Shown one piece after another: positions 12,337 through 61,778 of a DNA stretch of 64,000 bases. Position numbers and translations under genes: made by a program. Source of the DNA: Amphiscolops sp. MND2022 (taxonomy: Eukaryota). The notes beneath the pieces were generated by a model that did not search any database, was not told the origin of the DNA, and saw only the letters and a program-made list of their open reading frames with translations. Every line of letters starts with the position of its first letter. The stretch's first letter is position 1. The stretch covers positions 37,262,001 to 37,326,000 of the forward strand of contig OZ076421.1 of the NCBI GenBank assembly GCA_964187785.1, given 5' to 3'.

Positions 12337-14190
12337 CACTCTAAAACCCACTGAAAACTTCAAAATTACTCAAATAAGATAATCTTTACAACCAATTGAG
12401 AAACAGATCTAAAACATTTTGGAATAAGATCTAAAATCATTGGAATATCATTGGAATTATATAACATCTAAATATCCTAGTTTGACGGTGGAACGGGTTT
12501 TTTCCTTTGGATTTTAGATCTCAATGTTCATTAACAAATTCGGCGCTAGGTTGTCCCATAAAAAGTGTTCAAATAAACAATTCAGACTCGTTATCTTATA
12601 TTGCAAAAACGATCTGAACCTCATTTGATTGGTTTTTTGAGGTTATTAGGAAAACATCTGCTTGGTCGTTATATTATCTAAGCTACCAGGTAAAAGTAGT
12701 TAGGTCTACAAATGAATTGGAAAAGATTTCTGTCTTCACTTTTCAAGGCATGGGTCAGTCAGCTAGTAGAATGGAAACCGTATTACCGCTAATTTACAGT
12801 CCAAATAGATATATGATCTCGATCTACCTGAAGGTCTAGTTTGAGTGAAAAAGTTGCAATGTGTATGAATACTTTCACGATAATAGAGCCTCTGTTCTAT
12901 AATAGAGAATTCTGTTCAAAACTTCAGAACGGTCTTTGTATCAGGGCGAAAATGTTTCAAAAATCGAATCACTCGTCCTATTACTAACCTTCGAAGCCTT
13001 CCGTGCGGTATAAACGCTTTTTTGTTGAACGGTTTCGTTGAAGTTTTAAAATGCCTGAACAAAAAATTCGAGAAGGATCTGGAATATTGTACCACATTGG
13101 TATAATCACGAAGTGAAACCTGCTTGGATTATTGAAGAAACTCTTTTCACAACTTTTCTCGACATTGAAAAACACGAATATTTGACATCTTAACTGTTTA
13201 GTAAAAAAAATGTATGCCAAAGCATGTTGAACATTTTCGGTACAATTCGTAGACATTTTTACAGTTTTTCTTGGTGTCATGTTCTGACTGGAGATCAAGC
13301 ATTTGGTAAAGCTATCTTTTCCGTCCGAAGTTTGGTGAATTATTCTGAGGAAAGTCTTCGTGAAAAGGCTGGTCATTGTGATTGGTCCACGTCACTTCTA
13401 GGAGTGCATGTCATCGAATTTTTGAATCAAGATGTAGATTATGACACCTTGCAACTATTATGTTGTTGTTTCCACATATGGACTGCCATCAAGCAAGATT
13501 GTTCTTTCTATTGTCGCTACGTGACACTTTATGATTTCATGGTTACAAAACTGCGGTTTTTACGAGTTTAAATTCTAAGAAAATTGAGGCCGCAAAACTC
13601 GGCTACAAAATTATTGAGCGGGATCGAACTCGTAGCCGCACTTCAGGTTCAAAGAGTGCAACCTCTTATATATCTTTAAAAGGCTGTTTTTATTGAAAGT
13701 CTCACAGTGCCGAAAGTGTCAAGAAAGGAAGCTTTTAGTCGCGTACAGCTTTTTAATTCAAATAAAAACGATGGGAACCTCTAAGGTTGAAAAACGTTTT
13801 TTTTTTGGAAGTTGAAGATGACGGAAAAAACAAGTCCCTGTAACAATCAGGCACATTTTCTTTAAAAAATAAGCACTGTTGGTACATTCTGCTACATACA
13901 TGTTTCATAGGGTGTCACCAACTCGAGAATACTAATTGCAATGAGAGCGCTCATCAATTTTTACACCCCCACACTTGAGTAAAAACTGGGGGGTCAGATT
14001 TAAGAGAATTCTCTCCAAATAGTCCTTATCATCCCAATTCAACCCACACTGTGATAATTTCGTTAGTCTTCTGTCTATTGAAACCCCTATATATCCCTGA
14101 GTGGGGGTGCATGTACAATATACACACAATGTGTTTGCAATATGTTTGCAATATATTTACAATATAAATATTTAATACAATTGTATTTAG

Positions 14191-14326
14191 GTGGGCATTG
14201 AGTTGCACGTGGAGAGTATCAGAGACATAGCGGGAGACGCGACCATGGATCTCTACATGATAGAGACCTGGACCGACTGGCGGGAGGCTGGCAAGTACAA
14301 CCACACCATCAAAATGTCTGGAAAAG
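14191..14326 (+). CDS. Cys-loop ligand-gated anion channel, exon 2
   Basis: Acceptor TTGTATTTAG|GTG. Reads VGIELHVESIRDIAGDATMDLYMIETWTDWREAGKYNHTIKMSGK (beta1-beta2, W-x-D-x-R motif). Donor AAAG|GTCAG, phase 1, matches exon 3. Confidence 0.9.
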
Positions 14327-14350
14327 GTCAGGTCACATGTTCCTAGTTGA

Positions 14351-14833
14351 AACAAGCCGGGACCGGCCCAAGTCGGCGCCATATCTAAGGCTCAAAATTA
14401 GCAAAAAGACTTCAAAGTGTCAAAGTATTTTCTTCTACAGCACTCGAAAAAAATTTGTTGAAAAAAGGCTCACAATGTCGAAAACAACTGAAAGGGGGAA
14501 CCCTTTGGGATTTTTCAACATCTATTGTGTCGCAAAACTCCAAAAAATTGAAGGGGGACCCTTTGGAGAATTTTTTCCCGAAAAAAAACGTCTCGCAATG
14601 CCAAAAAAAACTGAAAGGGGGACCCTTTGGTCTCGTCCGGTATTGTACGTTACGCGGGGAAACTTTTTTAGTTCAGTTCTTTGGGCCAACGGGTACAATT
14701 TGGCGTCTTCTTAAAATTTTGTAGAACTTTTGGTAAAACTATTGTGGTCACTTCAGGTGGTCTTTTAAAAAAACACTGACGAAAAGCCATGACTATAGTC
14801 GACTCTTTTCTTAAGAAAAGCGCCGACCAAAAA
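14351..14833 (-). mobile_element. HINE-like family A copy in intron 2
   Basis: AACAAGCCGGGACCGGCCCAAGTCGGCGCC...GCGCCGACCAAAA; subterminal inverted repeat GTCGGCGC/GCGCCGAC. Confidence 0.75.
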
Positions 14834-15979
14834 TGCACATCTTTTGCAAAATTTTTCACAAAACCTCTTTGCAAAAGACAAAGAAAATGCAATATCTGAC
14901 ACTCCCTTTTACAAGATTCTTGTAAAGTTTACGAATTTCAGCTAAAAATGGTACAAAATATAAAAAATTTTACAAACCTTTTACAAAATTTGCATCATTT
15001 GACTTGAGAAAATATTGAAAAAAAGTAGATGCTAACCTATTAATCAGAAAAAATCATGGGAGGGATAAATGACACCATACTATTAACTTTAGCTTTGGCA
15101 ACAAAAGGATCCTATGTCTATCATAAGTGACCTCGATCAAACCTTTCTAAAACAGCTGAGAAAAAGAGAAAAAAAATACAATTAAAAAACCAAATAAAAT
15201 CATGCAATTTCCCATGACCCCACGACTGACCCTCGGGGATTTGAAACATACCATGAGTCATTTACTAATGTTCATGATAAAAAAGTATTCAACAACATCA
15301 AAATTGTTTTTTTAATACAAAAAGACAATCAACGCTGTTCTTGTTTCTCTTAAAAAGGGGTGTTTAAACCAGCAAGTTTTGATTGCAGAGCAAAAAAGTT
15401 CTTTTTTGTGGATATATTCCTGAAAAGTTTTGTGGCTGAAAAGTAAAGAAAAAATTGTGAAAACGTTTTGGATACTTTCAATTTTGTTGAAAAAGATAAA
15501 AGAAGTAAAAGAACGTTAAAAAGAGTGTGCATTTTTTATTTTAGTCCAATTTGAATCAACATATTGAAGAAAAAATGAAATCTGAATTCGGAGAAATTCA
15601 AAAGTTGAAGATCGAAAATCTTTTAGAGCTAAAGTGATCATTCAATCGTGGGCTACTCTTTTTACTTCAATCTTACTAGCTTTCGTGAAGTAACCCTTTA
15701 GTGGCATAATTATTACGTCAATTTGAAAGGTACGGCGACAACTCATACCAAGTGACAACTCATATCAAACAAAATTCATATCAGAAAATTGAATTCTAAA
15801 TCAGAAAAAGTCTGTTTAATGAATTTATTCCAAATCATCTGTTTAATATTTACAAAAATTTATTCACTTGAGGAGATTATGGTAAATATCAGTGCCTTCG
15901 ATAATTTTTTCATTATCATAACTTGATTTAAAAGTTTGCAGGGAAATTAATTAAATAATTAATCAATTAATTTTTCCAG

Positions 15980-16932
15980 GCACTGTCAACTTCTGCTGGA
16001 TTCCAGACACTTACTTCATTCTAGCCAGATCTATCTACTACAGCCCATCATCACAAAGTCTAACTGTCCAGAAAGACGGAAAAGTGTTTCTGGATCGCAA
16101 AATCCGGCTTGTGACCCCTTGCACGCCAGAAGTCTGGTTCTTCCCATTCGACGTCACAACTTGCAAAATTCTCATATCCAGTTACGGCTACGAGGAAGAC
16201 GAAATGGACCTGTATTGGCAGGAAACCGGGATTGATTTTCCCTTCGAGTACGAACCCTTGTCGGAAATGGGTTTCAAAATGATTGGAATGAAAACCAAAA
16301 AGTTCGCGGCCCCCTATGGTACGTCAAACTTCACAATTTTGGAAGGCCAGATAGAACTGAAGCGATTATACTCAGTTTACATCTATCAAATTTACATCCC
16401 CGCCGCACTGCTGGTCCTGCTATCTTGGGTCTCGTTTTTCATCAACCGAAACGCGACTCCGGCTCGAGCCAGCGTGGGTGTGACCACAGTTCTTACCATG
16501 CTAACTCTGGCTACCCAGAGCCAGCAGAACATGGAGAAGCACATAACTCTGGAAACAAGTTTGCTCGATGTGTACATTTGGGTCAGTTTTAGTTTCGTCA
16601 TTGCCGCAATGATGGAGTTTGCGGTTTCGGACTATTTCAATGACCGGAAAACCCGCGCTAAAAACAAACCCCGTCCGGCTGTGAAACCCCAGATCTACGA
16701 GAATCATAACAACAACAATCTGAACCCCATTCACAATAACATAGGAGGGGGGCCTCACCCCTCCATACCCCTAATCCGCAATTCCGACTCCGGCGCCCAA
16801 CCACCTGTCGAAAAAAATTCCATTTCCATCGACGGAGCTGCCCGTATATTTTTTCCTCTCACTTTTTTCATTTTCAACACAAGCTATTGGATCTACGTTT
16901 TTATCCACAGTCAAAAAAGTGACGACACATGA
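15980..16932 (+). CDS. Cys-loop ligand-gated anion channel (GABA-A/GlyR/GluCl superfamily), exon 3 with the rest of the ECD and M1-M4
   Basis: Acceptor TTTTTCCAG|GC, phase 1. Contains WIPDTYF (loop A), C-x13-C Cys-loop CTPEVWFFPFDVTTC, SSYGY (loop B), M2 with PAR anion-selectivity motif (TPARASVGVTTVLTMLTL), M3 and M4 (IDGAARIFFPLTFFIFNTSYW). Spliced CDS is 294+136+953=1383 nt = 460 aa plus stop. Confidence 0.95.
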
Positions 16933-21101: not shown

Positions 21102-22098
21102 AATCGCTCACTGCTTCCTCTTGTCAGCATAGAGCACGGCTTTTATTTGTTTTTCTGTTGTAATTCTAAATTGGAAACACATCAAACTCATTTTAAAATA
21201 GAAGAGAAATCGAGGCGAAGTTCAGTGATATGTTTTTCCCCAACAATTTAGCGTCAATCTGAAATTAATTCACATTGATGCGAATAATGGAGCCAAGCAT
21301 CTTACTGTAACACTCGTGTCTTCAACTGTTGTATTGTACAAAATTGTACAAATTGTACACTGAATTGTACAAAATTGCCTATTTATTTGATCAAATGTTT
21401 GATCAAAAATGTTCTCCAAATTCCAGATGAAACCGTGTATCTCGAAACTCAAGTTTCTGATGTTTTTATGGGGATTAAACCTATAAGAAGCTGAATTGAC
21501 CCGTTTTTTGTTTACTGGAAAACAATAGAATTTTTCAGCAGATTTGCTTTTGGTCTAATTTGAATATTTTTGGGTTCTTTGAAAATTTATCTGGCACAGA
21601 TTCAGGCCGATGCCCACGTTTTTCAAAGCAAAGGAATGAAATGAAAACCGTATTGGACATTTTATTTAGACGTGTCATTCTAAGCATCATCATCAAGTAT
21701 GTCTCAAAGAATTATGCAGACTCTAAAATAATTTTTGACATATTAGAGTTTTAGTTTTTACTTCATAAATTTAGAGTTTTCTAGAAACTTCATTTTCACC
21801 CATTATATGCATCAAATTGGGTTTCATCCTGAAACTTGAATATCGTTCTAAAATGTTTGTCGTCCATCCTGTTGCCTTACTCTGTTCTTAGCTTCCTGTT
21901 AGACTTGTATATATTGTCGATGAAGAAGCGATGAAAGAGGCAGCAAGCGTATGTAAGATGGTTTTTAAATTGAGGCCTTTTGGCCATATTTCGTTGCTTT
22001 TAGTGATGCTTGTTGCTTTTGACATCACAGCTTCCGCGAATTAGATATGATCAAGTCAGTTTTCGTAGATTTGAGTCCATTTATGAGCCCTTATTTAA

Positions 22099-22877
22099 TT
22101 TAACAACCGTGACTAGATGTTAAATCTATGACTAGAGTTCCTTTTTGTTTCCTATTTCAATCGGATGCGAGGACGGTTGTTTTAAATAGTTTTAAGCTAG
22201 CTTGCTTTTCTGTTGTCGTTCTAGGATTGCTCGAGTTAAAACTTTCTTCTGCTTTTTAGGAAAGAATTCAAATTTAAGTTTAATACGTACAAGTTAACAA
22301 CTTACATTATTTTATCAATCTGCACAACTGGAGTTGAAGATAGCTGGTGGGGTTTAGAAGCAAGGTTGGAGTTGGGGTGATGAAGTTGAGACAAAAGTCA
22401 GAACTGCTTTCTTCTTCGGAGTTAATTTATTGAATGATCAAGATTAAATTTTTGTGTTTTTCGAAAGGTTCGAACAAGTTTTTTTCATGAATTTTATCAA
22501 GGGGTAAATAATTGAGCACAGTAATTAAGATTAAATCCAAGCATGCAAGTTGACAAGTTGATACGAAGAATACGAAGAATAATTCCGAGCAAGATGTAAC
22601 AGTGGTTGAGTATTCAATACGTTTTAACAACATCAGTATTTAGAGGGTACAAGTTATAACAAAGTAAATGTGAGTTATGGTTTTAATTCTTGTTGAGAGT
22701 ACAAGTTATAACAATGCGAAGTTAAGTTATGAAGCAACAAGTTTTAACAAATGATTGTTCAAGAGGGGCTCTTTGCAAAGCGAGTTTTAAATTCTTGTCT
22801 GTTTTGTTTGTTTAATAAGGTACTTGAGTTTTCTTGTTGCTGTTTTGTTTTATCTTGTTCTGTCGAGGCTCGTTATA
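22099..22877 (-). repeat. 3' LTR of element 1
   Basis: Colinear with 34008-34786 at offset 11909; about 9 substitutions and no indels by manual comparison (about 1.2%). AATAAA on the - strand near 22425. Confidence 0.95.
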
Positions 22878-22880
22878 ACA

Positions 22881-22890
22881 GGCTCCTCCT
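22881..22890 (-). promoter_or_regulatory. Polypurine tract of element 1
   Basis: The - strand reads AGGAGGAGCC just upstream of TGT-TATAAC at the start of the 3' LTR. Confidence 0.7.
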
Positions 22891-23047
22891 GTGCAGAATT
22901 GTGTCCTTACAATTATACTAGCTGGTCCATTCAGGAATTGAATAGCAGGTATAATTGAGGATATTCTATTCGGCCTTGTTTAGCAGGGCGTCCATCGGAA
23001 GTATTGGGCAGGCATTCGGGGCAGAACAGGCGGCGGGAAAGAAGATC

Positions 23048-24151
23048 TTAAAGGCCTGTAAGACCACAGTGGTCATAGACTACGCGAAGGGGAGGATGCA
23101 TGAGAACCCGCTTGATGTTGGTAATGAGGGGCACGAGTCGCGCCGCATCATGTGCCAGGGGCCCAGTGAGGGTATTTTTGTCGGGGTGTATGAGGCGGAG
23201 TAAAGCGTTCGCCTGCGAAGATAAGAATGTAGTATCCGCATCAGATTTGCAACATAGGAAGTGATAGAGAGTGTCATCGGGTGTCGTTTCAGCTTCGAAA
23301 TCCGTCGGTAGCGAGGTTAAATGACTGAGGAGAAGTTGAATGGCGGCGTCGGGGGAAGTATTAGTCTTGCGTTTAAGTTGTGATTTAAGTTCGTTGATTT
23401 CCTCAATTCGGTGGAGAGATTCTTGCAGCAATTGATTATGTGTGACGCGAAGTTCCTCAAGGGTTGCTTTTAAACGTTCAGACTCTAATTGAGCATTGGC
23501 CAGGGAGCTTCTTATTGCAACAGCTTCAGCGTTGGCTTTTTCATACAGGTCGAAGTAATTCATTGCTTCCTCGCGAGCTTCACAAAAGGCAGTGTTCAAA
23601 TGGTCTACGCAGGAGAAGTCCGTCATAATTGAGCACCAGTCATCGAGGGCTTTATCGGTAGTGAGTTCGCATTGAATAGCGATGTCATCAGTATCGGGGT
23701 GTACTTTTGGCGGTTCAGGGTCAGGACAAAGGCAGTTGTTGGTAGGAAGATCTACGGCACACGTAGAGTCTGAGGTTAACGGGGGTGCAAGGCAAATTTG
23801 ATGCCATGAACGACGGAAGGGGCGGTTGGTGGTGTTGATGCGCTGTAAGCGCACGGCCTGCTGGTCGGGGAGGATCTGGGTGACACGATATTGCACATCT
23901 TCTACTAGGTATACATTGTCGCCAACACTGAGAGGGTGCACTCGTCCGGAACAAGTTTGCACAGGGAAGGGCGTGTTCTCCGGAACTCGGGTGTTGAAGA
24001 ACTGGAAGAAAGACCTAAACAAAAAAAAGTCATGACTAATTGTTTTTTTTTCATTTAGTATAACCCTATTATTAGATAAGACATACTGAGTAGTGTAACA
24101 TACGGAAACGTATGTAAGGCAGCTGAAACGTACGGGTACGTACGAGTGCAT
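23048..24151 (-). CDS. Retroelement accessory protein: SH3/Tudor-like barrel, coiled coil and C-terminal DnaJ J-domain (probably spliced, exon starting at 24014)
   Basis: Uninterrupted 367-codon ORF between env and the 3' LTR. The C-terminus TLYHFLCCKSDADTTFLSSQANALLRLIHPDKN...ITNIKRVLMHPPLRVVYDHCGLTGL follows the J-domain pattern (HPD at 23181-23189). Strong acceptor TTTTTTTTGTTTAG|G at 24015/24014. Confidence 0.85.
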   Translation of the reverse strand: MHSYVPVRFSCLTYVSVCYTTQYVLSNNRVILNEKKTISHDFFLFRSFFQFFNTRVPENTPFPVQTCSGRVHPLSVGDNVYLVEDVQYRVTQILPDQQAVRLQRINTTNRPFRRSWHQICLAPPLTSDSTCAVDLPTNNCLCPDPEPPKVHPDTDDIAIQCELTTDKALDDWCSIMTDFSCVDHLNTAFCEAREEAMNYFDLYEKANAEAVAIRSSLANAQLESERLKATLEELRVTHNQLLQESLHRIEEINELKSQLKRKTNTSPDAAIQLLLSHLTSLPTDFEAETTPDDTLYHFLCCKSDADTTFLSSQANALLRLIHPDKNTLTGPLAHDAARLVPLITNIKRVLMHPPLRVVYDHCGLTGL

Positions 24152-24351
24152 GAATCATGAGAACGTTGGCAACTGTTGGAATGGCACGGATACATGCCAA
24201 AGGGGGAGGACTGGGCCTCTGTGTGAATCTAGCGAGAGTCTTGACAGTGTTTGATTTCAATTAATAAATATGTAATATTTAGTAGTGGGTGACGCGGGAA
24301 CACGTACAAAGGGGGCAGCAAGCTGTTATTGGAAATCGAGGAGTGTAAAAC

Positions 24352-26733
24352 TTAAGTAGAAGATTCAGAATATATAGGAGCGCCAACGGTTGGATAAATT
24401 CGGGGTGGTGTTTGAGGTTTGTTATGGATTGTAAGAGAGTTAGTGTTAGTATTAGTGTTAGTATTAGTGTTAACTGAGGCATAGTTAGTTTGTAAGGTCT
24501 GGAGAGGTTCTGATTGTGTAATAGTAGCATGTGCGAGTGATTGAAGTGCGGTAAATTCCTCAAGCGAAAGATAGAGAAACGTGGAATCGATGTCAGCAGG
24601 GTTGGGAACAGAGTCGACGATGTGGAGGAAACGACCAGAGTTTCCTCGGAAGAAACGTTGCGGATGTGCAAATAGTCGTCGCCATTGTCGTCGAAAGAGC
24701 GTAAAATTCACGCCGAAAGTAAGTAATGATAGGGTGATGGAGACCAGCGAGAAGCACACAGCCGTTCGAAGAGGCATATAAGAAGACAGAGCAGCAGATG
24801 TAGCTGGAGAAATCGATGAGTAGTACTGGGTTATTGGTCGGGTCAATTCTTCAAGCGTGTCTGATGACATGCGTTTAACATCCGGCAATTCAGCAAGTTC
24901 GAGTCTAACGCTGCTGAGTACCGATTGACGTGCTTCAGCGACTGAGTAGGCATGAAACTTATGAGCTATTTGTGGAACATGTTTGAACACATGAGCCAAA
25001 GAGGGGGTCAGTTCGATAGACGCCACGAGAGGCTCCGGTTTGCTTTCGCAGAAATCCATGTCCGGTGAAAGAACAAGATCACCTTGGTTGAATGATAGTG
25101 TGCTGGTACAACTAGGGCGAATTAGGCAAGCTTGGCAAGAAAGTGTTGATATCGAAAATCCAGCCAAGCGACTATCGTTTTTCATTTGAATGTTAGGATT
25201 TCTTGAGATTACATGATAAAGGCCATCAGCTAGATAGAACGCTTGAGGAGCGTCAGGAAGCAAAACAGATTCCACCTTACAGTTTCGGAGAGATGGAATG
25301 TCATAATTATAGAACAAGGAGGGCAGGCAAAGGAGAGTTTCGTCTGTGGTGGTGGAGAAACCTTTACGACAAAGCTTTATCCTATTATTGCCGGAGCATT
25401 GCTGCACTGTGGAGGCGCTGAGTTCCGCGAACTGGGTATTGTCTTCAGATATGGCTAGGAAGGGGTTAGTGAGTTGGTAGATTGAAGCGGTGTCACCATC
25501 GTCATTCGGTTGATGCAGTGCTGTGGCATGATACACATTGAAAGAAGAAGAGCGGGAATTCATGGGAATACCGAGTACATCCGATATGCCTCGGGAAAGA
25601 AGGGATACTTCCAAGACAAGTTGTATCTCGTAGTAAATGGCTTCTTGGCCAGGACGGATAGCGGGGGACAATTTGGTCCCTCTGAGGATCTCGTCGTTGG
25701 CGAGCTCGTTAACAATTTGAGACAGCTGTGCTGGAAGGAGAAACTGTGGTGTGACGTAACCAGCTGCTAGTGACGATATTGTTGAAAAGAGTGCAACTTT
25801 GTAAGCGTAAAACGACGCACGATAACTTTTCACATGGGTATATAAGGAGTCCAAATGATTTATGTAGCTACGTATTTCCTCAGAAAAATACATGTTTTGA
25901 ATAATGTGGAGATTGCATTGCCAGGTTCTCGCCAATACACCTTTAATCTTCAAGATGTCTGTCTGGAGTAAACTAAGGTTGGCACCGATAGCATCGTTGA
26001 TCTGCTGAACACTTTCCTGTGTTGCTTTTATTTCATGTCCCAGCATGAAAAAGTTTTCATCATTTTTTGTCTGTACACGTTGTAGAGTTTCCTGGAAACT
26101 TCTTTGCTGGTCCATAATGCGGTTGACATTATCTTCCAACACTCTATTGTCTGTGCAGAGGTTGAAAATCGAGAGCGCCGAACATGCAGCGTTCTTTACT
26201 GGGTCTCCGAGAACCAGTCCAGCCGCGCCAGCGGCTGCCATCAATATTCCTACCGCTCGGCGGTTTCTTGTTCCGGGATGTGTATCCGGGTCCACTCGTG
26301 GAGGTAAGAAGGACGATGCTATGTCAAGTAATCGAGATTCATCATTGCGGACACTTTGGATTTCTTTCTCCAATAACCTTAGTTTTTCTTCCAACTGATC
26401 GAATAGCAAGTGATAGAGTTCTGTCATTTTCTGAGACTCACACAATTTTACGGTGTCCATCCCTTCGATTGTATTAGAGTTGCCTTTCGTTCGCAAGATG
26501 GTATACACATCGGTTAGGTTTATAAAAGGCATGTTAGGGAACGGCGAGAAGACGCGAACTTTGCTTTCACTTTCCGACGTCACGGCTTGGTATTTGAACA
26601 CGAAAGCTGCACCTTTCTTGAAGATGGGTGTGTCCATTGTGTCACTTAGATGGGTGGCGAATTGAACGTCCGCGGAGCTAAGATGAAGGGTGAAGAGCCA
26701 ATAGAAAAGGAGAAAGACAGCCATTGTGCCCAT
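24352..26733 (-). CDS. env: Envelope / class I fusion glycoprotein (793 aa)
   Basis: Signal peptide MAVFLLFYWLFTLHLSSA; furin site RNRR followed by fusion peptide AVGILMAAAGAAGLVLG; heptad-repeat helix; Cys-rich region; TM AVCFSLVSITLSLLTFGVNFTLF; cytoplasmic tail. No stops or frameshifts. Confidence 0.92.
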   Translation of the reverse strand: MGTMAVFLLFYWLFTLHLSSADVQFATHLSDTMDTPIFKKGAAFVFKYQAVTSESESKVRVFSPFPNMPFINLTDVYTILRTKGNSNTIEGMDTVKLCESQKMTELYHLLFDQLEEKLRLLEKEIQSVRNDESRLLDIASSFLPPRVDPDTHPGTRNRRAVGILMAAAGAAGLVLGDPVKNAACSALSIFNLCTDNRVLEDNVNRIMDQQRSFQETLQRVQTKNDENFFMLGHEIKATQESVQQINDAIGANLSLLQTDILKIKGVLARTWQCNLHIIQNMYFSEEIRSYINHLDSLYTHVKSYRASFYAYKVALFSTISSLAAGYVTPQFLLPAQLSQIVNELANDEILRGTKLSPAIRPGQEAIYYEIQLVLEVSLLSRGISDVLGIPMNSRSSSFNVYHATALHQPNDDGDTASIYQLTNPFLAISEDNTQFAELSASTVQQCSGNNRIKLCRKGFSTTTDETLLCLPSLFYNYDIPSLRNCKVESVLLPDAPQAFYLADGLYHVISRNPNIQMKNDSRLAGFSISTLSCQACLIRPSCTSTLSFNQGDLVLSPDMDFCESKPEPLVASIELTPSLAHVFKHVPQIAHKFHAYSVAEARQSVLSSVRLELAELPDVKRMSSDTLEELTRPITQYYSSISPATSAALSSYMPLRTAVCFSLVSITLSLLTFGVNFTLFRRQWRRLFAHPQRFFRGNSGRFLHIVDSVPNPADIDSTFLYLSLEEFTALQSLAHATITQSEPLQTLQTNYASVNTNTNTNTNTNSLTIHNKPQTPPRIYPTVGAPIYSESST

Positions 26734-26745
26734 CGGGGTTTCTCT

Positions 26746-26820
26746 CCTGAAGTAAGGAAATCATTGATTTTCATGGGAAAGTGAAGAGTTATAAGAAAGA
26801 AGAAGGATCAGAGAGGTTAG
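26746..26820 (-). promoter_or_regulatory. env splice acceptor (branch point, polypyrimidine tract, AG)
   Basis: The - strand reads ACTAAC CTCTCTGATCCTTCTTCTTTCTT...TTTCCTTACTTCAG|GAGAGAAACCCCGATG. Confidence 0.7.
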
Positions 26821-26825
26821 TATGT

Positions 26826-29800
26826 TCATGACCCTGGGCCGTTTCTGGCAGCGTTCTTCTTCTTTTTCGGGGACAGGAAGTCGGTGAGATCACGTGGAAT
26901 TCGAGCTTTGTATAGAGGATTGGCTTTTCGTTGGTTCATGGTAGATTGTCGTAGACTTCGCGGTGGCATAGAAGTGCGCTGTACGAATTGCTGGGTCGCG
27001 CTGTCAATAATAGTTCCTAGAGGGGATCGCAGATTTTCGTGAACGCGCGTTGGTGTTGAGTGCTGGGGAGTAATGGTTCTGAAAGAAGAATCCGAGGGTT
27101 CTCTACTCTGAAAATTTGAGGTGTTGAAGCAGTCAGCGGTCTGGGTTGGGACGAATGGGGGAGCTGAAGCATTCAGGAGAGATTCTCGGTGCACGGGAGA
27201 CTGCGACTGCTGGGTCTCGGATTGCGAAGTGGACGTAACAAACGATTGTGAAAAAGAACAGTTTGTTGGAGGTTGCCCTCTCATGGGCAGGAAAGTTACA
27301 TCACAGTCGCTATGATCAAAGCCCTGTCGCTTTGAGGGTTTTGCGGCCGTAGTAAGTGGCGTCAAGCGCTCGGGTATGTTACTCGTGGAAGGGGGTTGAC
27401 CGAAGTAGGGTTTGATACGGTCATAGTGAACTACCAACTGTTTCTGGGTGCTCAATTCTTCGATTTTGTAATTGGCGTCATTAATACATTTCAGTATGCG
27501 GTAGGGTCCACGCCAAGGACTAGATAATTTAGGACTATTTCCTTTTGTAGTGACAGGATAATGGAGGAGAATGTAATCATTTTCGTTATACGAAGAACCA
27601 TGGACCTTTTTGTTGTATATGGCATTCCGTCGCAATTGTTGGGCATTAGTGCTGTAACGCACTAGTTCAAAGGCTTTATGAAAAAGAGCTTGCTTTTGTA
27701 GTACGAAGTTGTTGGGAGGCAAGGCAAGATTGGATTGAGGTCCTTTGTACATCAAATCAATGGGTAATGTCAGTTCGTGGCCGAACACTAAGAAATTCGG
27801 TGTGAAGCCTGTTGATTCATGAACAGAGGAACGATAGGCCAATAAGACGAAGGGAAGAAGTGAAGACCAATTTGATTGGTCATCGGCAATGCATTTGGAA
27901 AGCATATTGAGCAGTGTTCGGTTCATTCGCTCAATGACTGAATTCGATTGGGGATGGAAGGAGGTAGTTCTGGTTTTATCGATTTCAAGTCGGCGCATAA
28001 GGTGCTGAAAAAGATCAGACTCGAAATTTCGGTCTTGGTCTGTATGAATACTGTAAGGACACCCAAAACGACAAATCCAGTGTTGCAAGAACGCGTTAGC
28101 AGTGGTTGTAGCTTGCTGATCAGGGAGTGGTAACGCCTCGTACCATTTTGTGAAGTGATCTCCGATCAATAAAATGAATTGGTTGCCGTTAGATAGCGGC
28201 AATGGCCCTAAGAAATCCATCCCGATATGGTGGAACGGGTAACTGACTTTCCAATCGACCAAGGAATGACGGTGCGTTTTCGGTGGGTTGGAGCGTTTTT
28301 GACAAATATCACAACATCGGATAAAAAATTTAACATCCTCCTTGAAGCCTGGCCAATAGAAGCGTTGTCGCACCTTCTCAATGACCTTGTAAGTTCCTAA
28401 ATGGCCAGCCGTTGGAGAACTATGAAGCGACTCAAGGACTTCTGGAATTAAGACGTGAGGTACAATCTGTTGAAGGAAGGGGACGCTACCATCGTTAGGC
28501 TCGAATTTTCGACAGAGAATATCGTTATGAAGGTATAGGCTACCTAAATGGTTATACATTCGCCAGGCCAGTCTCGGTAGGCCTTGTAACTCACTAGTGG
28601 TAGGGGTTTTGCTGGCCCGGACCCAAGCGCGAACGTGGCGTAGGGCCTCGTCTGCCTCTTGTAGTTCTTGTAGTGTTTCGATTCCACTGAATTTTCCATT
28701 GTGGTTAGGCTGCGAGGATCGTGCAAACTCTTTCAGATACAGTGATTTGAACAGTTGATGTACGGAACGTTTCTCGGATGAGTTGACAGATTTTGTCTTC
28801 GTCCAAGCAATCCACACCACATCCAGCACAAGGTATGCTTATACTTTTCACTGTATTCTGTTCAGCATGTGCGCGCATACGCTCTAACGAGGCTCTGAGG
28901 GTACCGTATGTGGTTTTGTTGTTCTGCTTTTGTTTTGTAATCAAGTGGTAGATGTAGCGCTGGGAGTCAGGTAACCACTGAGGCCAAATAGAATGAAGGG
29001 TGTGATCGAGGTTTGTGGGGTAGGCAATGGGAAAGTTTCTTTTGATCTTGCGAGCTATGCCCGATGACATTTTGAAGTCGGCGGAGACACAATGAGCGAA
29101 GGAGTCATTAGTTGAGAGAAGGTCCGCGGAAACCTCACGGTACTGGCCGGTTGGTGAGAGATCAGGAATGACTGGAGTAGACACATTCAAGTCTCGGTTT
29201 GGCCATTCCTGGTCACAGTTGTTCGCGTCTACAACTGGCTCATCTTCACCGGGTCTGTAAGCAGGAGTTGATTGTTCAGTGATCACGTTGATGACGGAAG
29301 GAGATCGTGACAGGCCATCAGCATGACCAATCGACTTTCCGGGACGATGCCTGACTTCGTAATTGAATGGAGCCAGCTTTTCAAGCCAGCGCGCGGTTAT
29401 CCCATCGGGATCTTTGAAGTTATGGAGCCATTGAAGTGCTCGGTGATCAGTAACAATTGTGAACTTTTGCCCTAGGAGATAGTGACGAAAGTGTCGGGTG
29501 AAATTAACAATAGCGAGAAGCTCACGCCGCGTCGCAGAATATTTGCTTTGAGCCTTGGAGAAAGACTTCGACGCGTAACATATAGCTCGCTCAAGACCGT
29601 CATGCTCTTGTGCAAGGACGGCGCCCATTGCAAATTGGCTTGCATCGGTGTATAAGATGAAAGGTTTGGTTAATGAAGGAAAAGCTAAAACGGGCGTCGT
29701 GGTGAGTTTTATTTCAAGGATCTCGAAGGCTTCCTGAGCTTCAGAGGTCCATTGGAAAGCAGACGAAGTCTCACTTGCTTTGTGAAGGGGGCGTGCAATG

Positions 29801-31561
29801 GCGGCAAAGTTTTGGACGTATCGGCGATAGTAAGAGGCTAGCCCCAGGAACGACTTCACCTGGGTTTGGTTTTGAGGTTGCGGGAATTCGACCACTGCTT
29901 TGACTTTGTCTGGGTCAACCTGTAGTCCATGTTGACTGACCACATGGCCGAGGAAGTTAACTTTTGTGCGAAAGAAGTCACACTTTGATGGGTTGATCTT
30001 CAAGTTGGCGTCACTGAAACGCTGAAATATTTCCCGAAGACGAGAGATGTGCTCCTGCTGAGTTTTTGCGAAAATGATGCAATCATCCAAATAAGGAACA
30101 CAAGTTTTCCAAATCAGGCCCACTAGGACACTTTCCATTAGGCTCTGGAACGTGTTCGGGCTCCCAGTGAGACCCATTGGCATGCGAAGCCATTTGAAGG
30201 AGCCGAAGGGGGTGCTAAAGGCTGTAAAATCTTGACTTTTCTTCAGCCATTGGTACTTGGTAGAACCCAGCCGACATGTCAATGGTAGAAAAGTAGGAGC
30301 TGCCTTCTAGTGTGTCGAAAATTTCTTCAATCGAGGGGATTGGCCAACTCGACTTGACGGTAGTCAATGACAAGCCGAAGTTTTCCATTTTTCTTTGGAA
30401 CCAACATAGCCGGGGAGCTATATGGACTGTGACAGGGAGTGATAAGATCTTTATCGAGAAAAACATCGATTTTGTTTTGGAGGTCTTCTTTGTAGTGCAG
30501 TGGCATCCTCCTGTTGGGAATTTTGACCGGCCTTGACCCTGGGTAGACTTCAATCTTGTGACTAGTGACATCGCACTTACCCAAATCCCATTCGGATGAA
30601 GAGAACACGTGCTCGAATTCCTTCACTAGATCTTTAAATTGTTGTCGGTATTCCTCATCGATGTCTTCGTCAATGTTGCTGAATAGTGACTCTAAGTCGT
30701 ACTTCATACTCTTCTTGGTTTTGACTTGCGACTGGTTTGGTTTCTGAGACGGACGTGGGAGAGGCGATTGACTGACGTTATTCAAACTGTCTTCAGACAC
30801 AATCTCTGATGTCCACAGAGTTGTGTTTTTGTATATAGTTATTATCGGAGGAGGCTGTGTTATTGAACACTATTGGAATCGTTTCCTCAGAATAGTTGAA
30901 AAGAATATTCGGAGCGACCACCTCGCGAGTAGAGTTAAACTTTTCGAGAGGTTCAAAATAGCATTCAAGGGGATAGGTGGTTTCTTCCAGTCCGAAATAT
31001 GGGCTGGCAGAATTTTGGCATGGCCAGCTGGTACCATGGCTGTTTCGGTGGCAATGACTCGAAACACTGCATTACTGGTGAGCTCAAAGGTTTGTGGTAC
31101 ATGGGAACAGACTGAGTTGAGTCGAGTCTCAGTTTCATCTGCGAGAACAGTGGATCACACTTGTTTGTTTCTAGGAAATCCAGTCCCAGAAGGCAATCGG
31201 CTTCTGAATTTTCCAAGACACGGAATTCATGAACGTACTGCTTCGTACCTATTCGTACCGGAACCCGTATGACGCCTTTGACTGCTATAGGTAGTACATT
31301 AGCTGCTCTCAGGTTCCTAGTACACGCGTTCAAGGGAATGTCATTTCTTTTCTTCAGTTCATCATAGATTTTAGGGTTCAGACAAGACACACTTGCTCCA
31401 CAATCACGTACAGCTTCTACATCTATGTTCAAAATTGTGAGTTTAACGAAGACGCTACGGGGGTCAACCACTGAATTCATTGTTAGGACTGATTGTGGGC
31501 CATGGGGTGTATTCGTGTCTGCGCGGAGGCCCTCTGGCGTAGACGATTTCAGTTTTCCTGG
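26826..31561 (-). pseudogene. pol: pol (protease, RT, RNase H, macrodomain, integrase) with about 5 frameshifts; -1 frame relative to gag
   Basis: PR AVRDCGAS; RT SPYSSPAMLVPKKNG, MPMGL, YLDD; RH YTDAS, RELLAIV, VTDHRAL. IN has HHCC (H-x6-H...C-x2-C), GMDFLGP, HTDQDRNF, VIERMNRTL and GPY. Frame breaks near 31085, 30870, 30340, 30240 and 28740. Confidence 0.95.
28742..29146 (-). other. TARG1/OARD1-type macrodomain inside Pol, between RNase H and integrase
   Basis: SFAHCVSADFKMSSGIA, RYIYHLITKQ, KTTYGTLRASLERMRAH and ISIPCAGCGVDCL resemble the TARG1 motifs SLAHCISEDCRMGAGIA, RYIYYLITKK, KPTYENLQKSLEAMKSH and LSMPRIGCGLDRL as I recall them. Confidence 0.88.
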
Positions 31562-32828
31562 TTTGACCGGGAAGCTCTGCAGTCCCGTCTGAAGTGGCCT
31601 ACTCTATGACAATTGAAACATGCTTTGCACTCGTTCGAGGCATGATTGGTCCGCTTACAATGACGACATTCCTGTTTCTGGTTCGATTTACTGTTGGAGT
31701 TCTTGGAATAGTCGGAAGAGTTCTTTCCTTGGTTATTACGGTTCGGTGAATGCCTTTGATTGTTCCTGTTGTCATACTCTCTGTGTCCGTTCCTCTGAGT
31801 GTGGCGACGCTCGTTTCCATCCTCAAAGTGGACCGATCGGGATCGATCTCCCGAGGTACTTCTATCATCTCGGCGTCCTCGGCCTTGATTTCTGTCGTGG
31901 GAATTGTTCCTGTTGGTTCCTTGCTGGCTGCTCGAGTTATTACTGTGACGATTGTTGTCTCGCGAATCGGACCTGTTGCTATGTGAAGCCTTTAAGTTGG
32001 CAATCTCAGCGCGTAACGTTCTAACAAGCTCATCGACTGTGTCAGACCTTTGGGAGCCGGAGGCCACTTGATTAACAGCACTTGTAAACTCCGTACTTGC
32101 TTTGTTTTGTTGTTCTAAGGCAAGGAACGAGTCAAGCTCGATAGCCAATGTTAACGCTTCATCAGCTGTGGTAGGCTTGGTTTTTCTTAGTTCCCATCGC
32201 AGGGTCGAATTCTTTAGACCTTCGATGAAACTGGTCAAAACAATTTGTTCAATAAGATGAGGATGGTTCCGGTATGCGCTTCTTGCTAAAGTTCGAATAT
32301 CGCACAAAAAAGTAGCAATGTCCTGCGTTGGTTGTTGTTTAGCGGCTTTCAAGCGAGCTTTCAGTATATCAACATTTGTAGTGTAGTTCTGTCGGAACGC
32401 TTCGACGAGTTGAGCATAATCGCCTTGTTGTTCAGATGACAAGGTTGTATAGAAATGAAGTGCATTTTCTCGCAGACGTAGTGCAAAATATTGCGGGCGA
32501 TGGTCATGTTGATCAGAGCTCCATCCTGAGAGCGTGGCAGCCGTGTTGAACTGTTGTAGATAGTCCTCGAAATCTCCAGAACCATTGAAGATTTCAGGCA
32601 TCAAGCAAGATGGGAGTGACACGCTCATGGGTAGAAAGGGGGGCGGTATTGACCGTTGACTGCCGCAGTGGAGTTAAAGATTCGTGTGAAAGCATCCGTA
32701 GTGTAATTGTTCGAAAGTGGATCGGCGGGAGTCGAAGAAGAAGTTGCTGATTGGTTTTTAGGAGGGCCTTCGGCATGGGAAGTGCCCGTGGAGGCGTCCA
32801 GTTGCACACCATTTTCAGTATCACTCAT
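31549..32828 (-). CDS. gag: gag (one frame break at about 32628-32643)
   Basis: PEIFNGSGDFEDYLQQFNTAATLSGW capsid-type start and two CCHC knuckles, CRHCKRTNHASNEC and CFNCHRVGHFRRDC. The 67-aa upstream ORF (32828-32625) overlaps the 359-aa ORF at ATGA. Confidence 0.9.
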
Positions 32829-32968
32829 TTTGATTGCAGAAAGAAACCTTTTCGTTCTAGCACTAGATTTGCTGACTGTTCGATATGGTTTATTCGAATG
32901 TTAATGTAGGTTACCCGCCAGAAACTGTAGATTTTGCTAATGCAGGGCGTAATATCACTTTCACACAA

Positions 32969-33349
32969 TCAAATTTGTGAGATACCTCTGCGGAGAAAAG
33001 TTATGCGTAGATGAGCGTCAATAAGAAGTAGATTTTCGACCCACTGTCGCGTCAATTTGAAAAAGAACAAGGATTTCGGGTGCAATCGTGATAGTTGTTT
33101 TCGGGAAGTGCTTTTCCGTCTGACTTCTGCGCGGTTTATGTTAGATTGATGTTCTTTGTCGTGTATTAGCATTAAATTCAAGTAAAGTTGTGAAATTTCA
33201 GGCGAAAGGCCTTTAGCATGCTCTGGATATTTTTCCAAATGTTGAAAGAGTTCAAATCGTTCGACTTGGCAGAGGAAACACGGATATTTTTGTGGCGATT
33301 GATGAGGGGGCACAGAGTTTATTTCAGAGGTAAAAACAAAGTGATACAT
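32969..33349 (-). CDS. Leader ORF-B, 126 aa, possible Zn-binding accessory protein
   Basis: ATG-initiated, in element sense, non-overlapping, between ORF-A and gag. Contains C-x2-C-x9-H-x6-H (CFLCQVERFELFQHLEKYPEH) and a basic stretch RRKSTSRK. Confidence 0.5.
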   Translation of the reverse strand: MYHFVFTSEINSVPPHQSPQKYPCFLCQVERFELFQHLEKYPEHAKGLSPEISQLYLNLMLIHDKEHQSNINRAEVRRKSTSRKQLSRLHPKSLFFFKLTRQWVENLLLIDAHLRITFLRRGISQI

Positions 33350-33402
33350 GCGGTTTTTTGGAAAATTAACGGTCCAGTTTTACGCAAAGGATTTGGTACT
33401 GT

Positions 33403-33648
33403 TTACACTGAAGACTTCATGCAACTGGCCGTGACATACTCCAAACGTATCAGTATGAAAGCTTGTCCGACTATGACAGTGAGAAATAAAAGCAAGACAC
33501 AAATGACACTAACTGAAGTTAAACACAAAGATGCGGAGTCTAAACGGAGTCTTCTATCCACAGCTCGCGAATACCGGGGAGGAGGTTCAGCGGGATAATT
33601 ACGGTTCAAAACGTACCGGGGTAAATGATTAGTATGGTTATGATACAT
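33403..33648 (-). CDS. Leader ORF-A, 81 aa, PPxY motif plus single TM helix
   Basis: ATG-initiated. PAEPPPRYS, basic RAVDRRLR, then hydrophobic LCLTSVSVICVLLLFLTVIVGQAFILI. Confidence 0.55.
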   Translation of the reverse strand: MYHNHTNHLPRYVLNRNYPAEPPPRYSRAVDRRLRLDSASLCLTSVSVICVLLLFLTVIVGQAFILIRLEYVTASCMKSSV

Positions 33649-33988
33649 AATTAATATTAGTATAGGTTAAAATTAGCTAACATTGAGGGTTTTCAAGGTT
33701 TAAGATAAGAAAGAAAAAACTGTAATTTTTACTATCCAACACTTTACCGTCTCCTGAAACGAAGAATAATTAGCGATTTTCAAGTTTTTCAAAAGAATTC
33801 CTAATTGCCCGTGCTCTGGAATTTGCCTACTTATGGGCCCTATCTGCCGTCTACTGTAAATTTTCGCTAGCAGAGCAGCTAGCGTTAGGGCGGGACAAGT
33901 CCCGGAACGAGATCTTAAGGCAGTGTTTTGGAAACATGTGGTCACGCTAAATTACGATATTTTACACTTTTCTTCTATAACAAGAGCA

Positions 33989-34006
33989 ATCCCACTCCTG
34001 TCACCA
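33989..34006 (-). promoter_or_regulatory. Primer-binding site (tRNA-Leu type) of element 1
   Basis: The - strand TGGTGACAGGAGTGGGAT lies 1 nt from the LTR end and is complementary to a tRNA 3' end ATCCCACTCCTGTCACCA, which resembles metazoan tRNA-Leu(CAG) ...ATCCCACTCCTGACACCA. Confidence 0.85.
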
Positions 34007-34007
34007 A

Positions 34008-34786
34008 TTTAACAACCGTGACTAGATGTTAAATCTATGACTAGAGTTCCTTTTTGTTTCCTATTTCAATCGGATGCGAGGACGGTTGTTTTAAATAGTT
34101 TTAAGCTAGCTTGCGTTTCTGTTGTCGTTCTAGGATTGCTCAAGTTAAAACTTTCTTTTGCTTTTTAGGAAAGAATTTAAATTTAAGTTTAATACGTACA
34201 AGTTAACAACTTACATTATTTTATCAATCTGCACAACTGGAGTTGAAGATAGCTGGTGGGGTTTAGAAGCAAGGTTGGAGTTGGGGTGATGAAGTTGAGA
34301 CAAAAGTCAGAACTGCTTTCTTCTTCGGAGTTAATTTATTGAATGATCAAGATTAAATTTTTGTGTTTTTCGAAAGGTTCGAACAAGTTTTTTTCCTGAA
34401 TTTTATCAAGGGGTAACTAATTGAGCACAGTAATTAAGATTAAATCCAAGCATGCAAGTTGACAAGTTGATACGAAGAATACGAAGAATAATTACGAGCA
34501 AGATTTAACAGTGGTTGAGTATTCAATACGTTTTAACAACATCAGTATTTAGAGGGTACAGGTTATAACAAAGTAAATGTGAGTTATGGTTTTAATTCTT
34601 GTTGAGAGTACAAGTTATAACAATGCGAAGTTAAGTTATGAAGCAACAAGTTTTAACAAATGATTGTTCAAGAGGGGCTCTTTGCAAAGCGAGTTTTAAA
34701 TTCTTGTCTGTTTTGTTTGTTTAATAAGGTACTTGAGTTTTCTTGTTGCTGTTTTGTTTTATCTTGTTCTGTCGAGGCTCGTTATA
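34008..34786 (-). repeat. 5' LTR of element 1
   Basis: Near-identical to 22099-22877 and adjacent to the PBS. Confidence 0.95.
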
Positions 34787-59700: not shown

Positions 59701-61778
59701 GCTCCTTCTTGAATAATTCCGTCTTCTTTTCGCTAGCTCGGTATCCGGCGTTTTGCAGTTTTGTGAGGACCTCGCGTACTTCTTTTTCGTGGTCTTCAAT
59801 GCTACCGTTGGTCACGCAAATAATGTCATCAAGCCAAACTGGTGTTTTGAACTCTAGCACGGTGTCTATGTGTTCTTGTAACACCGTGGTAATGTCTGAT
59901 AGGCCGTAGAAACGCTTCTTGAAACGATAATGTCCGGTAAAGTCTCCGCCAATAATCGAAAACACACAGTGTTTGGCTGCTTCCTTGGATAGTTTCGCTT
60001 GGCATAGTCTAAATCGATCTTCGACATCCAAATCTCGCCTTCACCTTCCGTAATTTTGGCTGAAGTTTGTTGATTAGCTCTTCCATATTCGGCATTGCTG
60101 CTTTTCTTTTTATACATGCTTCGTTGAGTTTTTTTGAGTCCAAAGCAATTTTGACAGATTTGTCCTTTTTGATAGTGATAACAGCAGGGCAAATAAAGCA
60201 ATTTTTCGTGGTTTGGTCGGACTTCTCAAGATGCCCCGACTCAATTAGTTTTTCTAATTCTTCTCGGAAATTTTTTTGAAAATGGATGGGAACTGGTCGT
60301 CCTTTTTGTTGTATGGGCTTGACGTCTTTCTTCAGTTGGATGTCGATTGTGAGATCTTTGATAGTATGAATATTTTTGAATAAGTCTTAGTGTTCGTTAA
60401 TAATCTTCTTTCGTCTTTCGTCTTCTTCCACGTGACGCATGACATTTGTCTTCTTGCTGCCCTGTAACCCAATTTCCAGTTTGTCTAACCAATCTAGCCC
60501 CAGAAATGGCTGAGTGTTTTTATTTTCTGTTATAAGGATAGGCAGTATTTCTTTGCTTTTCTCCGTCTTCATTTCGACCATCGCTTCGCCTCTAAATTTT
60601 ATTGGGTTTTTGTTTACATCGACGAAAAATTTTGTTGTTTTCTCCTTCTCGGTTGGAGTAATAATTGGTGGTATAATCGTCACCGGTGAGCCGGTATCAA
60701 TGATGAATTTTATTGGCTGGCCGTGGACCAATAGGACTGTTTTATAGAAATCAACTCGGTTAACGCCGTTGACGGACTGGATATGGTCAATCTTCGACCA
60801 TGATTCGGTGTTGTTATCCGATGATGTTGCTTCCTTTATCCGACTGACGGGTTAGGATTTGCACACCTTGGCGAAGTGCCCCATCTTTTTACAATTGTTA
60901 CATTGGGCTTTCCGTCTCGGACAAATGTGTTCGATTGACCTGTTCGATTTTCCGCAAAAGCGGCAATTTCGGTTTGAAAACTTTTTTCACGTTGAAATTA
61001 GGTTTGCGTTTTCGTGATTTGTTTGTGTGGCCAATCAATTCGATGGATGTCGAGCTACTTGATGAGACTTTTCTGACTTTTTTGTTTTTCAGTTTTTGTC
61101 CCCGTACTTCCGGTTGTAGTTGTCAAGTTCTGTCGTGTCTAGGACCAATTGTATTTTCAGTGGACCTTTTAAGAACTTTTCACGGGCTCTTTTGTCCTTG
61201 ATGGTAGCCGCAAATTTGTATGTGATGATTTCTTCCGCTGTGATATTACCGAAATCGCATTTTCCCTCGGTGTCCAACAATCTTTTCCAATGTTCGTCCA
61301 GTGTTTCATTGTCTTCCTGTTTCATATTGAAAAATTGTGCTCTGCTGTGGAATACATTTCTCACCGGAAGAAAGGTCTTCTTGAACAGTGTCAGTAGTTC
61401 GGGTGAGTTGACATCTTTTAACTAGCGGCCCCACTGACCTCTCATCACTTCTTGTTTGGCTTTTGGGCCAAGTGCCCAAATTACATCGCCTTTTATGTGG
61501 TAGACTGTGTGTGGGTCCATGAATTGTGTACCTGCATCGGTGATTTCCTCCAGGTTGCGGTTGTACGTCAGATGGATATGTTCCGAAATCTGCTCCCACC
61601 ACATCTTGGGATTGATTTTGGTAACATTTGTTTCTCTATCCGATAAAATCGGGATTTTGTACTTACTTTTTTCGATCCGTTCTAACGTTGTCGTTTGATT
61701 GTTATTCGTTCTGGTTGATTGTTCCGATGTATTCGGTCCGCCATCCGTTGAGTTGGGGTCAGTGTTGTTGTTTTCCAT
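56729..61778 (-). pseudogene. gag-pol of element 2, many frameshifts and stops
   Basis: CCHC knuckle CNNCKKMGHFAKVC; PR IIDTGSP; RT VWLDDII; RH TDAC, ELLG, LTDHQAL; IN IQLDFTG, IRTDNGS, GLVERT. Confidence 0.9.

Follow-up and report, generated by a model that had tools for sequence, protein, structure and literature searches.

A minus-strand open reading frame (ORF) in a 64,000-nucleotide stretch of the genome of the acoel Amphiscolops sp. MND2022 (contig OZ076421.1, positions 37,262,001 to 37,326,000; here called the window) belongs to the last gene of an env-carrying Ty3/gypsy-type long terminal repeat (LTR) retroelement, and its product ends in a true J-domain. We consider it probable, with a probability of roughly 0.7, that this J-protein is an element-encoded co-chaperone of Hsp70 made from a spliced mRNA. 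The ORF (23048-24151, 367 codons) had been noticed in an earlier reading of the letters without database searches (the sequence-only reading), which placed it between env (24352-26733) and the 3′ LTR (22097-22877) of an LTR retroelement; the LTR pair and the ORF coordinates confirm this placement. The parts of the gene and the two candidate splice acceptors are as follows.

22934-24151, minus strand: J-protein gene, from the start of the mechanically called ORF to the end of homology with relatives, with one premature stop
23051-23284, minus strand: J-domain, helices I-IV (residues ~290-367), recognised with Pfam, profiles, AlphaFold and Foldseek
23180-23188, minus strand: HPD motif (residues 322-324)
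23363-23656, minus strand: long helix, predicted coiled coil (residues 166-263)
23807-23968, minus strand: small beta-barrel, KOW/Tudor-like (residues 62-115), with an AlphaFold predicted local distance difference test score (pLDDT) of ~80-89
24015-24016, minus strand: candidate 3′ splice acceptor AG for the J-protein mRNA, with a T-rich tract and YAG/GT
26747-26748, minus strand: candidate 3′ splice acceptor AG for env, just upstream of the env ATG

The C-terminal strings quoted in the sequence-only reading are indeed found at residues ~290-367, and the 33-residue stretch ending in HPDKN aligns without gaps to helices I and II and the HPD loop of DNAJC5. Taken as a single sequence, the window protein matches Pfam DnaJ (PF00226) over profile positions 2-63 of 63 with an E-value of 0.0069 and 16.9 bits, below the cut-off of 27.8 bits, and its best match among PDB sequences, again DNAJC5, is marginal (E 0.28). 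The Pfam comparison proposed as a check has therefore a divided outcome: the window protein itself stays under the cut-off, whereas five distant full-length homologues exceed it (59.0, 40.8, 38.8, 33.3 and 31.1 bits). As far as sequence comparison goes, membership of the window protein in PF00226 is a matter of transitive homology.

The protein family gives a clearer picture than its single member. A large protein collection contained 71 relatives of the window protein with 38-50% identity. An alignment of 42 relatives showed at least 90% conservation for each of H322, P323, D324 and K325 and also for the hydrophobic core of helices II-IV, HPDK being likewise conserved to at least 90% in 43 sequences. 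Pfam DnaJ was matched at E <0.01 by 12 of the 42, and the profile built from them, compared with solved structures, found DNAJC5 with an E-value of 0.003, followed by DNAJA2, DNAJB8, DNAJC10, DNAJA1, DNAJC24 and dnj-12 with weaker values. Searching 1.84 billion representatives with the family profile returned 211 proteins at E ≤0.001, among them distant full-length members with the same domain layout. When the alignment was extended down to 23% identity (14 sequences), H322 and D324 were still invariant and P323 was conserved to at least 90%.

Structure prediction agrees with the sequence profiles, and the AlphaFold check that had been suggested along with the original claim gave the expected four helices with the HPD between helices II and III in both models inspected. 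In the AlphaFold2 model of the window protein the helices comprise residues 294-299, 307-321, 331-350 and 353-366, with the HPD in the II-III loop and a pLDDT of 70-90; in the model of a full-length sister protein (P0241) the J module reaches a pLDDT of ~90-95. In a Foldseek search of PDB, J-domains were the top matches of the C-terminal module (target TM-scores 0.6-0.8, root-mean-square deviation (rmsd) ~2 Å). The E-values of these matches are modest (~0.007-0.1) because the J-domain is short within a long query. Among viral models the matches were giant-virus and phage DnaJ proteins. We conclude that the C-terminal domain is a true J-domain. Its cellular source could not be traced, the best 150 of the 211 profile hits all being members of the family itself except for one protein with multiple J-domains (E 2e-8).

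One feature of the domain departs from its best cellular match. Within the 14 residues preceding the HPD the window protein has a single lysine or arginine, and the median in 39 relatives is also 1; several distant members have 3-4, and DNAJC5 has five in the same aligned stretch of helix II. This low basicity of helix II may make the contact with Hsp70 weak or atypical.

We inspected the surroundings of eleven relatives (L001-L007 and L009-L012), which come from long-read "metagenome" assemblies evidently containing the animal's own genome; L010 is a short contig from another sample and L011 belongs to a Tara Oceans marine metagenome. Linkage to env in other copies, which the sequence-only reading had named as something to look for, is borne out: in all 11 places with upstream DNA (the window, L001-L007, L009, L010 and L012) the J gene follows env, and the HPD is conserved down to 23% identity. 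The complete order gag-pol-env-J is found in 9 of the 11 (the window, L001-L007 and L012), and in L010 the C-terminal part of env lies upstream of the J gene. The gag, pol, env and J genes are all open in L002, L005 and L006, with gag of 465-471 amino acids (aa), pol of 1549-1577 aa and env of 769-784 aa; in L003 the gag region is in pieces, but pol (1606 aa), env (780 aa) and the J gene are open. Lineages that share the env-J order have proteins with a mere 23-34% identity to the window protein, and clusters at 90% identity comprise 15, 32 and 45 sequences on separate contigs.

A separate observation concerns L009 (7192-11017), whose open env (755 codons) has 58% identity to that of the window; the J gene after it is open as well, and its product (P0092) exceeds the Pfam DnaJ cut-off. 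A search for gag, pol and an LTR pair in the 10 kb on either side found none. This locus is part of the same host genome and shares dispersed repeats with the window; it might represent an element that has suffered a deletion, or an env-J pair that has been kept.

The J gene also bears the marks of selection. Between subfamilies the proportion of synonymous differences (pS) is saturated at 0.63-0.96 while that of nonsynonymous differences (pN) amounts to 0.25-0.40, and in most comparisons the J part has the smallest pN. The sole unsaturated pair, L004 versus L007, has a pN of 0.09 and a pS of 0.36, corresponding to a ratio of nonsynonymous to synonymous rates (ω) of 0.20 overall and 0.30 in the J part; the window and its near-twin L001 have too few differences for a selection estimate. 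These comparisons of coding sequences indicate that the gene is under purifying selection, in line with the predicted dN/dS below 1. With the env-J order kept across lineages, the gene is a stable, selected part of the element lineage and not a one-off capture. A profile match, presence in sister copies and constrained evolution were all observed, where the sequence-only reading had named a missing profile match, absence from sister copies or a dN/dS near 1 as speaking against itself.

That reading has to be corrected as regards the state of the ORF and its start. The ORF had been described as intact, but compared with four intact relatives the J gene of the window gives one high-scoring segment pair (HSP) in one frame with one internal stop, and homology extends, without a change of frame, beyond the ORF to 22934. 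The ORF therefore ends with the J-domain because a premature stop cuts off a conserved cysteine-containing tail. This tail motif is kept in 11 of the 13 HPDK-carrying sister copies in the window copy's own 90%-identity cluster, and in the family C377 is invariant and C380 and P382 are conserved to at least 90% (numbering of the full-length sister). The tail cysteines together with an H/C-C pair at the end of helix IV could bind a metal.

The complete protein, as seen in the full-length sister, consists of a KOW/Tudor-like beta-barrel, a linker rich in proline and cysteine, a helix of ~100 residues, the J-domain and the tail with its cysteine pattern. For the barrel the nearest Foldseek neighbours are the KOW domains of Spt5/NusG, the ribosomal proteins uL24/eL26 and the Tudor domain of SGF29, with an rmsd of 1.6-2.4 Å over ~55 residues and E-values of ~0.04-0.2. 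AlphaFold models residues 180-263 as a single helix (pLDDT 95-98), and matches of this part to coiled-coil families in Pfam are weak.

The start of the gene appears to lie on another exon. A T-rich tract with YAG/GT is present 40-61 nucleotides upstream of the barrel in 10 of 10 loci, including the distant L009 and L012 (both counted by hand in this survey), and the distance from acceptor to barrel equals 1 modulo 3 in every one of them. In six of the ten, the stretch from the preceding stop to the barrel contains no ATG in frame, and the initial methionine of many database relatives turned out to be a GTG or TTG codon that a prokaryotic gene caller had taken as the start. Because of the phase-conserved acceptor and the six loci lacking an in-frame ATG we doubt the ATG at 24151, which is probably not the native start. 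Most likely the J gene would be read from a spliced subgenomic mRNA in which the start codon is contributed by the first exon. The candidate acceptor of env has a branch-point-like (t/c)actaac, a pyrimidine tract and cag/g in the window, and L002 and L003 are alike, with tag/g or cag/g.

A splice donor was sought by three approaches: alignment of the leaders gave no conserved block, strict GTRAGT-type motifs were absent from the leaders, and a nine-position score, applied to the internal sequence of five elements, found no site at a conserved position. As the donor was not found, cis- and trans-splicing are indistinguishable here.

How might such a protein serve a retroelement? The HPD loop of a J-domain engages Hsp70 and triggers ATP hydrolysis, upon which Hsp70 closes on its client. 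Recruitment of Hsp70 is, from the sequence, the most likely function of the J-protein, which would make it a class C J-domain co-chaperone encoded by the element: a client would be held by the barrel and the coiled coil, and the HPD loop would dock on the host Hsp70, trigger ATP hydrolysis and clamp Hsp70 onto this client. Our guess for the client are the element's own particle proteins, with a role in assembly or disassembly of Gag; it is made by analogy with other J-proteins that have a C-terminal J-domain. We would rank the element's own particle slightly ahead, with a host target second and nearly as likely, and then Env folding in the endoplasmic reticulum (ER); a decayed structural role would be least likely because the HPD is conserved. 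The roles suggested in the sequence-only reading, namely capsid assembly or uncoating, Env folding, and interference with Argonaute/PIWI loading, are guesses, and none of them is favoured by the results.

Among the competing explanations the most serious, although we think it unlikely, is that the J-protein directs host Hsp70 onto a host protein, for example a component of a restriction or small-RNA pathway, and so counters the defence of the host alongside a macro domain in pol, which could remove antiviral ADP-ribosylation. The same elements do carry this TARG1-like macro domain, a host-like module of the kind that viruses use against defence, and the barrel resembles KOW/Tudor modules which read proteins or nucleic acids; yet the barrel matches are weak, as their E-values show, and no result indicates a target. 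A role in the lumen or membrane of the ER, where the J-protein would partner a BiP-type Hsp70 and help the F-type Env to fold, seems improbable to us. It would require a signal sequence from the first exon, and a start codon from an upstream exon is indeed needed in most loci; the constant position of the J gene directly after env and the persistence of the open env-J pair of L009 without gag-pol would also suit such a role. However, no signal peptide or membrane segment was found downstream of the J-gene acceptor and no donor in or after the start of env, and the many conserved cysteines fit either compartment.

The window lineage has lost most basic residues of helix II and scores low against Pfam, which would be consistent with a decayed J-like fold that has given up Hsp70 stimulation and serves a structural purpose such as oligomer packing. 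We regard this as distinctly improbable, since histidine and aspartate of the HPD are invariant and proline nearly so down to 23% identity, and since in most comparisons no part of the protein has a lower pN than the J part. The HPD motif is lost in known J-like proteins that have ceased to act on Hsp70. Finally, the marginal single-sequence statistics (Pfam, PDB) might be taken as a sign of a chance resemblance or of a host fragment trapped once. The evidence from the family-level profile, the fold, the HPD conservation and the genomic context, with the J gene following env in every one of the 11 places, leaves next to no room for this, and we reject both chance and a singly trapped fragment of a host gene.

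The co-chaperone reading itself has to bear several counterweights. They are the score of the window protein below the Pfam cut-off, the modest Foldseek E-values of the J-domain matches, the basic-poor helix II with its possibly weak Hsp70 contact, and the fact that the window holds a dead copy of the element. In addition, no donor was found that would fix the N-terminus and the compartment of the J-protein, and none of the results points to a client.

The element that carries the gene was delimited by its LTR pair, by Pfam domains and by collinearity with intact relatives, and spans 12,690 bp. Its features are listed here; the J gene and the splice acceptors have been given above.

22097-34786, minus strand: whole LTR retroelement, in the order 5′ LTR, small ORF, gag, pol (protease, reverse transcriptase, RNase H, macro domain, integrase), env, J-protein gene, 3′ LTR
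34006-34786, minus strand: 5′ LTR, 781 bp, from pairwise LTR comparison
32969-33349, minus strand: small ORF of 126 aa between 5′ LTR and gag, conserved in relatives
31549-32673, minus strand: gag with CCHC zinc knuckle (zf-CCHC, E 0.0012)
26844-31513, minus strand: pol with protease, reverse transcriptase, RNase H, macro domain and integrase (Pfam), broken
28738-29151, minus strand: TARG1/OARD1-like macro domain in pol, flanked by RNase H and integrase (Pfam Macro, 27.1 bits, cut-off 22)
24352-26733, minus strand: env, 793 aa, open and full length, F-type (the kind of baculovirus F and errantivirus Env)
22097-22877, minus strand: 3′ LTR, 781 bp, from pairwise LTR comparison

The two direct repeats are 98.85% identical, with 9 mismatches and no gaps over 781 bp, and they bound a region whose G+C content (0.42-0.48) is higher than that of the surroundings (~0.36). 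Between them the Pfam domains follow the order protease, reverse transcriptase, RNase H and integrase with gag upstream, the integrase being matched in its zinc, core and C-terminal domains. Reading of the flanks and LTR edges revealed no clear target-site duplication, and we make no confident call. At the position of the 126-aa ORF, L002 has an ORF that is 54% identical and L004 one that is 28% identical. Neither the small ORFs 5′ of gag nor the ORFs downstream of the J gene in relatives have a Pfam match. A second small ORF of ~100 aa is common to L004-L007 and was not found in the leader of the window element.

The condition of the individual genes was judged, as for the J gene, by comparison with the four intact relatives. 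For gag there is one HSP in one frame, without stops in the aligned part and covering 84-89% of the intact gag proteins. The pol gene is broken by four frameshifts and one in-frame stop: its alignment to each of the four intact pol proteins falls into five HSPs in three frames, and the counts agree throughout. The env gene covers 97-100% of its intact relatives without a stop. With both pol and the J gene broken, the window copy is by its sequence a dead, defective one.

The env product has a hydrophobic leader at its N-terminus and an RNRR site followed by a hydrophobic stretch. It has no Pfam match of its own and a PDB sequence search with it was also empty; we assign it to the baculovirus F kind because two homologues with 49% identity to it score 33 and 29 bits in Pfam Baculo_F, above the cut-off of 24.1. 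The part of the gene encoding the cytoplasmic tail contains a simple repeat, a run of alternating Asn and Thr codons (24352-24450, minus strand). At L004 a neighbouring ORF of 626 aa (13671-15551) matches Pfam Monjiviricetes_fusion, which suggests that another type of viral fusion gene is present in the same host genome.

The macro domain occupies the same place in the pol of four relatives (L002, L003, L005 and L006). A profile of the five copies matches human OARD1 end to end (residues 12-148 of 149) with an E-value of 1e-34, and the columns corresponding to its KPTY and G.GLD motifs show no variation among the five. They include K127 and D162, which we take to be catalytic residues of the TARG1/OARD1 type. 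We found no published report of a macro domain inside a gypsy-type Pol. Fish epsilon-like endogenous retroviruses (ERVs) have ORFs for macro-domain or CNPase proteins (PMC4977317); there the macro domain is a separate ORF, whereas in the acoel element it is part of the Pol polyprotein.

Elsewhere in the window an exon of a host gene for a Cys-loop receptor of the GABA/glycine type lies at 16084-16932 (plus strand), and the named proteins nearest to it belong to two acoels, Convolutriloba macropyga (69% identity) and Symsagittifera roscoffensis. The receptor thus marks the host as an acoel other than these two species. Another LTR retroelement has left a remnant at ~58968-60341 (minus strand), with reverse transcriptase and RNase H pieces in more than one frame which are ~26-34% identical to the pol of the relatives described above. 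Scans of the window for Rfam families and tRNA genes gave no match.

Accessory genes separate the simple retrotransposons from the complex retroviruses, and very few are known outside the vertebrates. The sequence-only reading knew of no LTR-retroelement gene of the present kind, and our full-text searches, made in an incomplete library, likewise brought up no report of a J-domain in any retroelement. The J gene is conserved and selected, offers a well-understood handle in the J-domain/Hsp70 pair and belongs to an element family with many open copies, and would provide a direct route to the question of what use a chaperone is to a retroelement. Along with the macro domain of Pol it indicates that, in an early-branching bilaterian, gypsy-type elements with an env have accumulated modules of their hosts in the manner of large viruses. 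Somewhat tentatively, and with less than even confidence, we go further and suggest an acoel lineage of complex retrovirus-like elements which has long kept host-derived modules, namely a spliced Hsp70-recruiting J-protein, a TARG1-like ADP-ribose hydrolase in Pol, and small 5′ ORFs. Were this true, the lineage would be to invertebrates a parallel of the complex retroviruses, and its accessory gene for hijacking chaperones would be of a kind that we found described for no reverse-transcribing element.

Among cellular proteins the class C (type III) J-proteins are the closest to the acoel protein, DNAJC5 being the best sequence match and DNAJB12, DNAJC24 and others the best fold matches. Common to both are the four-helix fold with the HPD between helices II and III, the joining of the J-domain to unrelated client-binding parts, and the lack of a glycine/phenylalanine-rich (G/F) region and of a DnaJ-type zinc finger, neither of which was detected in the acoel protein. 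It differs from them by an identity of 25-30% over ~75 residues, by its basic-poor helix II and by being encoded in a retroelement; moreover, the architecture of barrel, coiled coil, J-domain and cysteine tail returned only relatives of the family in the profile search.

A J-domain encoded by a parasite is as an idea not new. J-domains are known from the T antigens of polyomaviruses, and giant viruses and phages carry them as well. With these DNA viruses the acoel element shares that a genetic parasite brings its own J-domain, presumably for the host Hsp70, but in the acoel protein the domain is C-terminal and the carrier is a reverse-transcribing element. A specific relationship to polyomavirus T antigens beyond the shared fold is not supported, as none appeared in the list of PDB sequence hits or in the 50 matches that each Foldseek search listed.

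In its general organisation the element is like the errantivirus-type Ty3/gypsy elements such as Drosophila gypsy and ZAM, with LTRs, gag, a pol in the order protease, reverse transcriptase, RNase H and integrase, and, downstream of pol, an F-type env whose mRNA is likely spliced. Unlike these it has one more conserved gene behind env, small ORFs ahead of gag and a macro domain in pol, and its host is an acoel. Env-carrying gypsy-type elements have been described across metazoans (PMC13524379), where neither a J-domain nor acoels are mentioned. The keeping of extra ORFs of cellular origin by an LTR lineage finds its parallel in the captured ORFs of bdelloid rotifer LTR elements (PMC5408684) and in the fish epsilon-like ERVs (PMC4977317); a J-domain is reported in neither paper.

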